Below are positions 45,241 to 49,673 of a stretch of DNA of 64,000 nt, one piece after another. Position numbers and translations under genes: made by a program. How positions within the stretch are numbered: position 1 is the stretch's first letter; each line of letters starts with the position of its first letter. Under the pieces are notes generated by a model. The model searched no databases. It saw only the letters and a program-made list of their open reading frames with translations, and had not been told where the DNA came from. Source of the DNA: Blepharisma stoltei ATCC 30299 (lineage: Eukaryota; Protista; Ciliophora); assembly GCA_965603825.1 (NCBI GenBank), contig CBFDEM010000053.1, positions 434,001 through 498,000 on the forward strand, given 5' to 3'.

Positions 45241-46198
45241 ATGGCATTTCCAGCCTGTGAAGTTGGAGCGGAATGGTGCGTTGTAGCTGACTCACTGGCT
45301 GGGGTTTCTTTTATAGAGTTCTGCTTGACAGTATTTTATAATCAGACATACCAAGTGTTTCAAAATTATAAGTTCATAAAGAATTATCGAGATAAAACAC
45401 TTATCATTCTTTACATCCAAGTCCTTCAGACGCTATGCATGTGCGTTCACTATTTAGTTATAATCAGCACCCTAAACGTGTTGTACATGATCATGATTTA
45501 TTTTCAATTCATTGAAGATACTTTGGTGTTTTATTACTTCTCCTGGGAAGCTGCAAAAGTAGAAAATAGAGGGATTTTATATAAAAGAGCCGGAGTTATA
45601 CTGCTGGCCGTGAATTTATTATATTTAACAGGATTTGTTATATTTTTTGGTGTGGATAGTATGCGAAATGATGATGTTTTTTTATGTACAGACAACGTTT
45701 GAATTTATTTGAGACTTAGTGGCCTTTTATTGACAACTATGTTTTTAATTTTAGGAATTAAGATGACACAGAAGCTGAAAATGCTAAAAAACAGTGATAA
45801 CCTGTTTTTCGACACTGGGAGAGAAAAAGAACTATGGTAATATTCTCATCAGGGGTTTGATTTTAATCATGCTTGTGGCAAATACTGCGGCTATGTTCCA
45901 AAATCTTATGCAAAGATTTTATACTCAAGACAACTGCAACAATTTATTTGAAGGGAACCAAGGTGCTAATATCTTTTTATTTATCCTACTCAGGTTTTTG
46001 TCTCAAGATATGTTTATGATTACTTGCCTTTACGTGTTTTGGGCTTCAAGGAGGTTTGGAAGCAATGAAGTGTCTATTGTGATTAATATTTAGGTATCGT
46101 TTCCTATGAGCCATCAAGCCTTAACTCCAAAATCCGATGAACCTCAGGTAATGAGCCCTCTGGAATGGGGAATTGATTCCATTTTATCTGCAAGCTAA
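45241..46198 (+). CDS. Multi-pass (about 7 TM) membrane protein of unknown function
   Basis: TGA read-through at 45700. Introns 45331-45345 (probable), 45837-45852 (16 nt, explains the +1 frame change) and 46079-46093; ends TAA 46196-46198. Confidence 0.72.
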
Positions 46199-46617
46199 TT
46201 TTTGGAGGTTATAATTAAATTATGAAGGCAATAAGCCTTTTAAATTCCTCAGATATAATTTAAATAATGAAATTTATTTAATTCACAATATTGATCTTTG
46301 GTTTTTGCATTTCAGAGTTCAGTATTTAAACTCTTTTAGCCTGTAGAAGATATATACTTTAAAGCTGCTTGCATGCTATTCATCCATTTATGCAAACCTT
46401 TTCTGGCAATTTATATTAATTTTTTCAAAGCAATCCTGGCTGGCCTATTTCAAATCTTACATTAATAATGCTAAGTAGTATTTTGACTCTAATTATTAAC
46501 GAAATTTCATATGAAAGATAAGTCTTACAGTAAAGTTTTTGATTAACTTTCTAATATATATTTAAAATTAATTTAAATCACTAATTTTCTTATATATTTT
46601 ACCAGTCAATAATAGAA

Positions 46618-47301
46618 ATGCTATTTCGAATGCTTTTAGCTGAAGCAATTGGAACATTCGTCCTAACCTTCACAGTAGGGGTCTCTACAAGTGAGCCTTT
46701 TACTGTTGGAGGTGCTCTCTGGGCAGCAATGGTTGCAACTGCATTTGTATCAGGAGCTCACTTCAACCCTGCAATTACTCTTTCAATAATAACACGCAAG
46801 TATATCAACAATACTCTTTCCCAGCCAGAGCTCGTGAAATTTCTCTTATACATGGTTGTGCAGTTTTTCTCAGCTTTTATTGCATCATTATGTGCCTGGG
46901 GTATAATCCGATATCCAGTTTATTTTGATATTTCTTCAGATTATAGCGGCTCTCAAGGATTCTTTGCAGAATTAATTTACACAACAATTCTCTGTGCGAA
47001 TGTTTTGATGATTGGGACTGTGAATGATGCGATCGTGGTTTCTGGAGGCATTATTGCGCTGACATTGACAACGGGAAACTGGGCAATTGGGAGAATCACT
47101 GGAGGCTGTTTTAATCCTGCAGTTGGGCTGGGGATTAATTTGGCTTATCTATTACATAAAGATGACCATTTCGGAATTACTTGGCTTTATATTATTGCAC
47201 CTTACTTAGGAGGAATTGTAGGTGGTGTGTTTGCATCAATCTTTTTGAATGAAGTTACAGTCCAAAAGAAGAGTGTGATTGAAAAAAGTCAAGCAGAATA
47301 A
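46618..47301 (+). CDS. Aquaporin (MIP family)
   Basis: AEAIGTF, SGAHFNPA, TGGCFNPA, WLYIIAPYLGG. Confidence 0.95.
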   Translation: MLFRMLLAEAIGTFVLTFTVGVSTSEPFTVGGALWAAMVATAFVSGAHFNPAITLSIITRKYINNTLSQPELVKFLLYMVVQFFSAFIASLCAWGIIRYPVYFDISSDYSGSQGFFAELIYTTILCANVLMIGTVNDAIVVSGGIIALTLTTGNWAIGRITGGCFNPAVGLGINLAYLLHKDDHFGITWLYIIAPYLGGIVGGVFASIFLNEVTVQKKSVIEKSQAE

Positions 47302-47487
47302 TCTTAATAATCACTAGAGATAGATAGTGATATAGGTTTATTAGAATAGCAACTAAATAGATGAAGTTATTAGATTTATATATAATATAGCTATATAGAT
47401 ATGTAAAATTTCAATCTTAAAAACTATTTGAAGTTTAAAGAAAAACCAAAAAACTCTGTTTTCAATAATTGTCTTGTTTTTCTATAA

Positions 47488-47608
47488 TAATGTGCGGCTT
47501 TATCTGTAAGACGAGGACTTAATTCGCGTCACTTATCGAAGCCATATAATTTCTGACTGCTAAACCGAGAGAGGCTAACTTGCAGTTCTCTTCCTTGGCC
47601 CAGTCATT
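47488..47608 (-). ncRNA. Candidate box H/ACA guide RNA (scaRNA-like) targeting U2 snRNA Psi43/44
   Basis: Minus strand: hairpin TGACTG...CAGTCA, hinge with AAATTA (ANANNA), hairpin GGCTT...AAGCC, then ACA plus 3 nt. Pocket strands GATAAG and CAGATA are complementary to U2 CUUAUC and UAUCUG. Confidence 0.72.
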
Positions 47609-47687
47609 TTTATTTATTATCAAACTACTTATTTATATTTTAAACACATAAAATATTTTTTAAAAAGAATGCTTAAGATTATAAACC

Positions 47688-49146
47688 TTAATTCACTGCA
47701 ACAGGTGGTAAAAAAGGATAAAATACCGTTTGAGGGTTCTTATCAGGCATATTTATCACCACGATTGGTCTCACTTCTCTATGAGCTCCATCAGCATTTT
47801 CAATTAATATAGGCTCTTCTGGCATTCTTTCAGTATTTGAATCAGGTGCTACGTAAACTATTAAGTTTTGTTTATTTTCTTGGTTTTTTGCAGCCTTTTT
47901 AGCTTTTCTTCTTTTACTAACACATAAACAGCATACAACTCCTACAGCTCCTAAAGCTATAACTCCTCCAATTGGAAGTCCAATTTTAAGTCCAAGTAGA
48001 TCGTCAGTGGAATCTCCTTTATTTCCACTATGATGATTTACTGTCGGCACACCTAGCCCAATAGAGGCACTAATACCATTTGCAGGTAGACTAAAAGCGC
48101 TATAAAATTGTCTTAAGAAAGAAGTTCCGATGACCCAATTACCAGTCTGAGATTCTTCAAATAAAAGCACACACTCACCAATTGAGGAATTGTATTGCAA
48201 ATATCCTTCAGGAGGTAGCATGATAAGCTGACCTCCCATAAAAAACGTTATATTTGGATATTCGCTCATATAATCGCAGTAGCAATTGATTTGAGGGCCA
48301 TCTTGGCAATCGTATTTTCTTTTAAAAAAATCGTAAATGCGATATAAATCATTATGAGGGACAAAAATAAAAGGAGTGCTTAAATCAAATACTGCTTGGC
48401 TATAAGTGTTAATAGTTTCACCCATTAAATCTACTTCTTCAAGATTAACTGCCCAATTGTTTTGTCCTTCTACAAGAGATAAGAACTTCATCTCATCCTC
48501 TTCTATATAATCTTTATCAATTCCCCCCAAAATTAACTTAGAATTTGTATCTGCATCCTTACTAAAATACAGAGAAAACATAGGAGCTTCAATTTGGCTT
48601 TGATTATACAATGTCTGAATTAAGTTATCGTAGCTATTGTTAAAGCCAAGCCCAAGAACCCCATCCCAGCCTTTTCCTTCATATGTTAAATCTTCTACCA
48701 CAAGTGCAAAAGTTTGACTATTTGCAGCGAGGTCTGAAATCTCAACAGCATCTGTGCTTAAAAGGGCTTTTGCACCGCTGTATTGTGGCTATATGAAAAT
48801 TACATCGAGATGGACAAATTCTATTTTAGGAGCAAATGTAGAGGATTCAGTAGGGACAAATACGTCTAAGGGTTTGACGCAAGATTTGCAAATTTCATCA
48901 ACTATTCAGAGATTCTGAGTTACTATTACTGAAGTTGTTATATCAAGAAGAAGACAAAAAATTTGGCCTGGGGTACCGACTGAGACTTGAACTGTGTAAG
49001 CAATCTGACATAAAAGTTACGTTGCTATAGTTAGAAATGACGGCAGATGAGATGTCCTTTCCTGAGCGCAAATGCTTTTCTTCGGTTTGGATAGGGAGAT
49101 AAAGCTTTGAAAGGACAGAAACGAATAGAAGGGAAATGAGCTTCAT
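47688..49146 (-). CDS. Pepsin-family (A1) aspartic protease homologue, type I membrane protein, degenerate active-site motifs
   Basis: Signal peptide; introns 49005-49020 (16 nt), 48915-48929, 48789-48803. YTVQVSVGTPGQ, LLDITTS, DGVLGLG, AVFDLST, WVIGTSFLRQFY, C-terminal TM. Confidence 0.82.
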
Positions 49147-49673
49147 TATTTATTTGATTTAATTCACCAATCATATGATTTATGGAATATCTTAATAAAA
49201 AGATAATTGAAAAAGTTAATTATCGGAGGTTGAGAGCTGGGATTTTTTCACCAATTAAAATGGATACTCGAGGATTTGAAGAGGAAAAAGAATACAGTTC
49301 TTAGATGGTGAAGTTATAGTAATAAGAATTTTTAAACTTTTTGCCATTGCAATTTGATAGCAGGTTTGATTAGATCTTAAAGTTTAATAGCCTATTCCAA
49401 GTCACTAGTAAGCTTCTGCTGATAATGCACTGCGGAGCCCCGAAGGATGATTGACATAGTCTTGTCAGATGAGCTTTTTAAATGTGCTTCACTAAATGTA
49501 CTTCTTCATCGAGTTCAGATCTTTGGAAAACTGCCCTTCGGCTCTTCAAATCAGCAAGAGTCGGGTCCTGCTCAAAAGTTCCAATATCCGCTGATTTGGG
49601 TTGATATCATCTTAGAAAGTTTTCATCGAGCTAAAGAATCTTAGATAAGAAATTGTTTACTAATTATTAGATT

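Follow-up and report, generated by a model that had tools for sequence, protein, structure and literature searches.

At positions 47488-47608 (minus strand) of the window, the macronuclear genome of Blepharisma stoltei probably encodes a canonical guide RNA of the box H/ACA class, ~121 nt long and with two hairpins, whose predicted target is U2 snRNA at U43 and U44. Its gene is single-copy and unannotated. The window is the whole 64,000-nt stretch of DNA that we analyzed, namely positions 434001-498000 of contig 53, and the genome searches covered the assembly of 41.46 Mb in 64 contigs. We consider it very likely that the locus is a real H/ACA RNA gene and, judging from sequence comparison, likely that its 3' pocket guides the formation of Ψ43 and/or Ψ44 in U2. 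An earlier note, made from the sequence of the window, had taken the locus for a free-standing RNA of the H/ACA type whose 3' pocket fits U2 at U43/U44; this core reading is supported by a conservation island that coincides with the predicted RNA ends, by near-invariant guide strands and boxes, by base pairs kept in a relative, by the uniqueness of the site in the genome, and by the sequence of the host U2.

The element forms a GC-richer island, as previously claimed (GC 0.43 at 47500-47599 versus 0.18-0.23 in the flanks), and it lies outside any ORF, since no ORF of at least 40 aa overlaps it. It is located between the 3' ends of two convergent mRNAs, those of an aquaporin (MIP, ending near 47340) and an aspartyl protease (ending at 47656). 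Read on the minus strand, the predicted RNA starts with a 5' hairpin (47554-47606), which has a fast-evolving interior and is closed by the basal stem UGACUG (47606-47601)/CAGUCA (47559-47554). The hinge contains the H box AAAUUA (47552-47547), which conforms to ANANNA, and is followed by the 3' hairpin (47496-47543) with its pseudouridylation pocket, closed by the basal stem GGCUU (47543-47539)/AAGCC (47500-47496). The pocket is made of the 5' guide strand GAUAAG (47532-47537) and the 3' guide strand CAGAUA (47501-47506), which flank an upper stem with a 9-nt apical loop (AUUAAGUCC, 47507-47531). The RNA ends with the ACA box (47493-47491) and the 3-nt tail UUA (47490-47488). The basal stems, boxes, and guide strands and the minus-strand order (hairpin, AAATTA, hairpin, ACA, TTA) had been described in the earlier note, and each of its coordinates proved exact to the base. 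The minimum-energy folds of the B. stoltei element and of its counterpart in a relative, as well as the RNAalifold consensus of the two, each consist of two hairpins, giving the hairpin-hinge-hairpin-tail architecture of this RNA class. The folding energy of the B. stoltei element is no better than that of shuffled sequences (z = -0.6); weak folding energy is usual for H/ACA RNAs.

The genome of B. stoltei contains two U2 genes, both of which read AUACCUUCUCGG...GUAGUAUCUGUUCUUAUCAGU and share the numbering of human U2. The U2 segment on which the earlier note had staked its reading is thus present in both host genes, and the 6+6 bp pocket that it had proposed around U43/U44 holds for both of them: GAUAAG pairs with C45-C50 (CUUAUC) and CAGAUA pairs with U37-G42 (UAUCUG), with zero G-U pairs. 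In this U43 register, the guide starts to pair 13 nt before ACA. A second register of 7+5 bp is possible around U44-C45, with the first paired guide base 14 nt before ACA, as A47507 has two possible partners, either U47531 within the RNA or U43 of U2. The complementarity with the host U2 is of the two-part kind, in which a 5'-UN-3' stays unpaired at a distance of 14-16 nt from the box. Differences between the two U2 genes are found in the loop of stem-loop I (CCUUUUGG versus CCCCAAAGG) and further downstream.

We scanned both pockets of the predicted RNA against the host SSU, 5.8S, and LSU rRNAs and the U1, U2, U4, U5, and U6 snRNAs. U43 and U44 of U2 are the best legitimate matches of the 3' pocket in this set. 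One more site, U468 of SSU rRNA, has a score numerically equal to that of U2; its 10+3 pairing takes up the basal-stem bases AAGCC, so the hairpin must unfold, and we rejected it as a pocket interaction for this reason. For the 5' hairpin, to which the earlier note could assign no target, the scan likewise gave no convincing match in rRNA or snRNAs; because the best matches need 4-7 G-U pairs, we left the 5' pocket without an assigned target. It seems that the 5' hairpin serves as a structural half and does not act as a guide.

The match of the two guide strands to U2 is by itself not significant. The hexamer pair GATAAG-N12-40-CAGATA has 227 matches in the genome versus 119 for the reversed control, or about one per three windows, and the additional presence of ACA 5-11 nt further on leaves 17 sites versus 11 for the control. 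We inspected all 17 sites with the pocket and ACA, and 47488-47608 is the only one in which an upper stem is combined with a 6-bp stem immediately next to the pocket; the second-best site has a 5-bp stem with offsets, and the upper stem is absent from it.

The evidence that we regard as decisive for the predicted H/ACA RNA is its conservation in a relative. The comparison involves one relative, represented by a 9.9-kb contig from another public run (L028), which was reached via the homolog of the adjoining aquaporin (~84-85% aa identity). The gene order on this contig is the same as in B. stoltei: aquaporin (84% aa), the element, an aspartyl protease homolog (30% aa), and UCH protease (72% aa). 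A blastn comparison of positions 46000-49500 of the window with L028 revealed only two blocks, the aquaporin coding sequence (73%) and 47487-47611 (81% over 127 nt). The second block matches the predicted RNA ends within 1-3 nt, and the remaining intergenic DNA is unalignable. On the 3' side, ACA and the following UUA are invariant and the similarity ends directly after ACAUUA.

The distribution of differences along the element is highly uneven. The relative has 0 of 12 positions changed in the 5' basal stem, 1 of 10 in the 3' basal stem, and 0 of 6 in ACAUUA. The 5' guide strand GAUAAG is invariant (1 of 7 positions differ if its flank is included), and the 3' guide strand differs at 1 of 6 positions, with CAGAU invariant and the last A replaced by U; taken together, the guide strands show one change in 15 nt. 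The upper stem-loop (47507-47531) differs at 1 of 25 positions, by a change from A-U to G.U. By comparison, 18 of the 41 positions in the interior of the 5' hairpin are different (44%), and the probability of finding no more than the 4 changes observed among the 48 positions of the 3' hairpin at this rate is P = 7e-8. The single change in the 3' basal stem, from U-A to U.G, is compatible with pairing. Conservation of the stems, boxes, and pocket in a relative, for which the earlier note had proposed to look, was thus found in L028, with an imperfect H box: it reads AAAUUC with an inserted base, so that the sixth position is not A.

An RNAalifold analysis of the two sequences yielded 29 consensus pairs, none of which is broken in either species. 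Six of them are kept via one-sided compatible changes (G-C/G.U and A-U/G.U), and double compensatory changes are absent among the 29 pairs in B. stoltei and this one relative. We treat this pairing pattern as supportive and not as independent evidence, since the two sequences compared had also served to derive the structure. At the edges of the pocket, the relative has C changed to U on the 5' side and A changed to U on the 3' side. If the U2 of the relative is identical to that of B. stoltei, these changes would add a pair with A51 and lose the pair with U37, so that 12 bp would be kept, arranged as 7+5 instead of 6+6.

On the strand that encodes the element, the flanking genes are not the same in the two species. 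In L028, a zinc-finger ORF is found ~640 nt upstream, a gene starts 27 nt downstream, and the end of the aspartyl protease homolog is ~1.2 kb away; therefore, conservation applies to the element as an independent unit and not as an untranslated region of a neighboring gene. The downstream ORF in L028 (3480-3530, minus strand) starts with ATGGGCTGTTGC (MGCC...), 27 nt past the 3' end of the RNA and on the same strand, and the RNA thus fills the gap directly upstream of this gene. The aspartyl proteases (window positions 47688-49166 and L028 5464-6138) are ~30% identical, as opposed to 84% for the aquaporin and 72% for UCH, and a protein from a different sample (P0002) is 81% identical to the B. 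stoltei one, so that the syntenic copy in L028 may be a fast-evolving gene or a paralog.

The search for further orthologs via aquaporin homologs found none on one other ciliate contig or on a Stentor coeruleus contig, where the aquaporin has other neighbors. A GATAAG...CAGAT site in Stentor was rejected, as the stems and the box are absent from it. A metagenome search with a 19-nt core gave one match, a stretch of 23 nt identical to the 3' hairpin (AATTAAGTCCTCGTCTTACAGAT; L029, 4797-4819) on contig Ga0164290_1000165, which is 248 kb long and looks bacterial by eye. This match falls inside a 183-aa ORF and has no H/ACA context, and we therefore attribute it to chance.

The conservation pattern bears on each of the alternative explanations of the locus. 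A functionless look-alike that arose by chance in an AT-rich spacer would be in keeping with the abundance of the hexamer pair in the genome and with the unexceptional folding energy; it would, however, have to account for 81% identity over 127 nt in the midst of unalignable intergenic DNA, next to a protein that is just 30% identical, as well as for the slow change of the 3' hairpin relative to the 5' interior and the full H/ACA context seen at this one genomic site, and we regard it as extremely improbable. We assign an equally low probability to a small protein-coding gene that uses UGA as a tryptophan codon. One minus-strand frame is open across the whole B. stoltei element under this code, and a 53-aa ORF is called in the relative, but the B. 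stoltei frame lacks an ATG, the two species are put out of frame with each other by a 1-nt indel in the hinge, and the frame of the relative stops inside the element; the residues shared by the two are only 14 and derive from the 3' hairpin. On the missing start codon, the frame-shifting indel, and the stop within the element, we excluded the coding reading. Another kind of conserved non-coding element, such as a structured 3' flank, a termination signal, or a small RNA of unknown type with a coincidental H/ACA look and U2 match, is suggested by the position of the locus 48 nt past the poly(A) site of the same-strand aspartyl protease mRNA, by the lack of an Rfam family at threshold, and by the lack of a recognizable promoter. 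This explanation is quite unlikely, given that the element is kept in the relative despite different same-strand neighbors and that its invariant parts are exactly those that an H/ACA RNA needs, i.e., the basal stems, the pocket strands, and ACA with three nucleotides.

The last alternative keeps the RNA class and concerns its substrate: a genuine H/ACA RNA could act on rRNA, another small RNA, or an mRNA instead of U2, or could be an orphan with a non-guide role. Target predictions for H/ACA RNAs are often wrong, the score of SSU rRNA U468 equals that of U2, and the near-invariant 25-nt upper stem-loop hints at a constraint beyond guiding. However, the SSU match has the 10+3 arrangement that requires unfolding of the hairpin, whereas the match to U2 has canonical geometry, comprises 12 Watson-Crick pairs, and concerns a site that is pseudouridylated across eukaryotes (PMC5473140); within the pocket, conservation is highest in the guide bases. 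A substrate other than U2 is thus unlikely, and U2 remains the predicted target of the 3' pocket.

Transcript evidence was sought in four runs that behave as RNA, in that introns are spliced, silent spacers are uncovered, and both neighboring genes are covered. The runs were viewed as contigs, a form of data in which short, non-polyadenylated RNAs are easily missed, and three of the four have no contig over the locus. The fourth run has one unstranded contig of depth ~3 at 47419-47581, which shares 94 nt with the 3' part of the predicted RNA and overshoots its predicted 3' end by 69 nt. This weak signal is ambiguous, as it could come either from a precursor with an extended 3' end or from read-through out of the aquaporin gene, which is strongly expressed.

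All spliceosomal snRNA genes of B. stoltei (L001 1440-1720, L002 1440-1720, L024, L025, and L026) have in common an upstream element, TCCCWTAA at about -57, that is similar to the element AAACCCATAA of Tetrahymena, and the U1, U2, U4, and U5 genes have a common 3' box CTTCAAW...AACTGAA just past the mature end. Neither the upstream element nor the 3' box is common to the locus and its L028 ortholog. The RNA gene is preceded by an AT-rich, TATA-like stretch at about -30. Two further candidate signals in B. stoltei, AACCCTCAAA at -129 and CTTCAAATAG 56 nt downstream, were discounted because they are not conserved. Downstream of the RNA, at 47439-47484 (minus strand), AGAAAAAC and GUUUUUCU could form an 8-bp stem around an AAAAC/GUUUU hairpin accompanied by T runs; the stem and the T runs are not conserved in the relative, and they may be a local 3'-end signal or a chance product of AT-rich sequence. 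The U6 gene of the window (23433-23536, plus strand; 93.6 bits in Rfam) carries the upstream element of these snRNA genes (TGTCCCATAAAG) at a distance of ~60 nt, and six consecutive T follow immediately at the 3' end.

At gathering thresholds, the Rfam search of the whole window detected U6 only. A permissive scan of 47380-47720 gave snoR138 as the best match, with 28.6 bits versus a cut-off of 44 and in a shifted register, in which ACAUUA would serve as the H box and a third, AT-rich hairpin would extend down to 47412. We rejected this three-hairpin reading because the similarity to the relative ends right after ACAUUA. The SCARNA8 model (RF00286) has no match at the locus up to an E value of 10, and its best genome-wide score, 19 bits versus a cut-off of 53, lies elsewhere. 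Both apical loops contain an NNAG with a conserved AG (UAAG in the 3' loop and CAAG or CUAG in the 5' loop), a 2-nt motif that does not prove a CAB box (ugAG), and the label of a scaRNA, which implies localization in Cajal bodies, is unproven.

In H/ACA RNPs, the RNA binds the proteins Cbf5, Nop10, Gar1, and Nhp2, the pocket strands clamp the substrate, and an unpaired U located 14-16 nt from the box is isomerized. By analogy, we infer that the B. stoltei locus is transcribed as a discrete RNA, which would assemble with Cbf5/dyskerin, Nop10, Gar1, and Nhp2 into an RNP that modifies U2; the genome encodes the DKCLD domain of Cbf5. The pocket of the 3' hairpin would bind the U2 segment UAUCUG-UU-CUUAUC just downstream of the branch-point recognition sequence. 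The 6+6 bp register would place U43 unpaired under the upper stem, 14 nt from ACA, and a one-base slide to the 7+5 bp register would bring U44 to this place, 15 nt from ACA; the unpaired uridine would then be isomerized by Cbf5.

The near-invariance of the 25-nt upper stem-loop may point to more than guiding. In human dual guides, the bases that are used in both configurations are perfectly conserved (PMC8763049), and the near-invariant upper stem fits a dual guide in this respect. We tentatively suggest, as a rather doubtful possibility, that the stem-loop makes the RNA a true dual-register guide for U43/U44 or, alternatively, carries a ciliate signal for localization or protein binding. If either of these readings is true, RNA-guided modification of U2 at positions 43/44 would occur in Alveolata as well as in opisthokonts, which would favor a guide already present in the eukaryotic ancestor over a Pus1-only origin of the modification.

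The B. stoltei genome was reported to comprise 41 Mb in 64 telomere-to-telomere contigs, with introns of 15-16 bp and UGA as a tryptophan codon (10.1101/2021.12.14.471607). The aspartyl protease gene next to the locus (minus strand) has introns of 15, 15, and 16 nt at 48789, 48915, and 49005, which are missing from the contig of run X11 and retained in the contigs of the other three runs. Their absence from an RNA-derived contig confirms the tiny introns, and their presence in the other three means either that the introns are retained to a substantial degree or that assembly affected the contigs. The earlier note had linked the predicted guide to these introns, through a possible tuning of the branch helix. 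We consider this link speculation without support, because vertebrates and Schizosaccharomyces pombe guide the same U2 sites and have ordinary introns.

The predicted RNA belongs to an ordinary kind, and as RNA-guided pseudouridylation of U2 is well known, its presence would not surprise a specialist. The published non-coding RNA annotation of B. stoltei covers no classes other than tRNA, rRNA, SRP RNA, and spliceosomal RNAs (10.1101/2021.12.14.471607), and thus genes of the snoRNA type are missing from it; the locus is useful for this annotation as a well-supported example of such a gene, with a predicted guide role at two pseudouridines that rank among the most conserved in the spliceosome. 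The U2 Ψ43/44 site is modified in fungi, insects, worms, and vertebrates, and Ψ43 is among the most conserved snRNA modifications (PMC5473140). Guided formation of U2 Ψ43/44 has been verified for vertebrates and for fission yeast; our prediction would extend it to a ciliate of deep-branching position and makes U2 modification testable in an organism that splices introns of 15-16 nt, but it does not make the modification special to tiny introns. Among ciliates, Tetrahymena and Oxytricha are known to have H/ACA RNAs (PMC3273799, PMC3177221); we found no description of heterotrich snoRNAs in the literature.

Comparison with known guides of the same U2 region separates the candidates named in the earlier note. 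Yeast snR81 is also an H/ACA RNA that pseudouridylates this region, but it acts at Ψ42, which is position 41 in the present numbering (PMC5733568), whereas the B. stoltei pocket leaves U43/U44 and not position 41 unpaired. The proposed equivalence of the two RNAs therefore fails; the yeast counterpart of Ψ43, Ψ44, is made by Pus1p (PMC5473140). In addition, one of the paired bases in the Blepharisma/vertebrate U2 sequence is different in yeast U2. The analogy with vertebrate SCARNA8 (also U92 or pugU2-34/44) is apt for the 3' domain, since the predicted U2 segment and both predicted registers coincide with those of SCARNA8. The 3'-terminal pocket of SCARNA8 makes both U2 Ψ43 and Ψ44 by two alternative registers (PMC8763049, PMC5473140), and both modifications are lost in the human SCARNA8 knockout (PMC8763049). 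The two RNAs are alike in being box H/ACA RNAs with a 3'-terminal pocket for this segment, with both registers possible in B. stoltei, and share no sequence or structure homology detectable with the Rfam model. They also differ in the 5' hairpin, which guides U2 Ψ34 in SCARNA8 and fits neither U2 U34 nor any other scanned site in B. stoltei, and in their setting, as SCARNA8 is intronic and found in Cajal bodies and the B. stoltei RNA is intergenic.

In Tetrahymena thermophila, the two-stem H/ACA RNAs (TtnuHACA) are 124-136 nt long and, as here, are mostly encoded by independent intergenic genes, and one of them is predicted to target an snRNA (PMC3273799). Most intergenic monocistronic snoRNA genes of Tetrahymena carry the upstream element mentioned above, whereas its B. 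stoltei counterpart TCCCWTAA is absent upstream of both the RNA and its ortholog. The fission yeast RNA pugU2-43/44 (GenBank TPA BK009173), which comes from a different eukaryotic supergroup and is likened here by description, is likewise a stand-alone H/ACA RNA; it is encoded downstream of RPC10 and guides both U2 Ψ43 and Ψ44 with its 3'-terminal pocket, in a register that depends on the upper stem (PMC5473140). Experimental verification of the S. pombe RNA came from RACE, northern blot, and a yeast assay, whereas the B. stoltei RNA is a prediction supported by conservation. Thus, we propose the B. stoltei RNA as a probable functional analog of S. pombe pugU2-43/44 as well as of vertebrate SCARNA8, in the latter case of its 3' domain.
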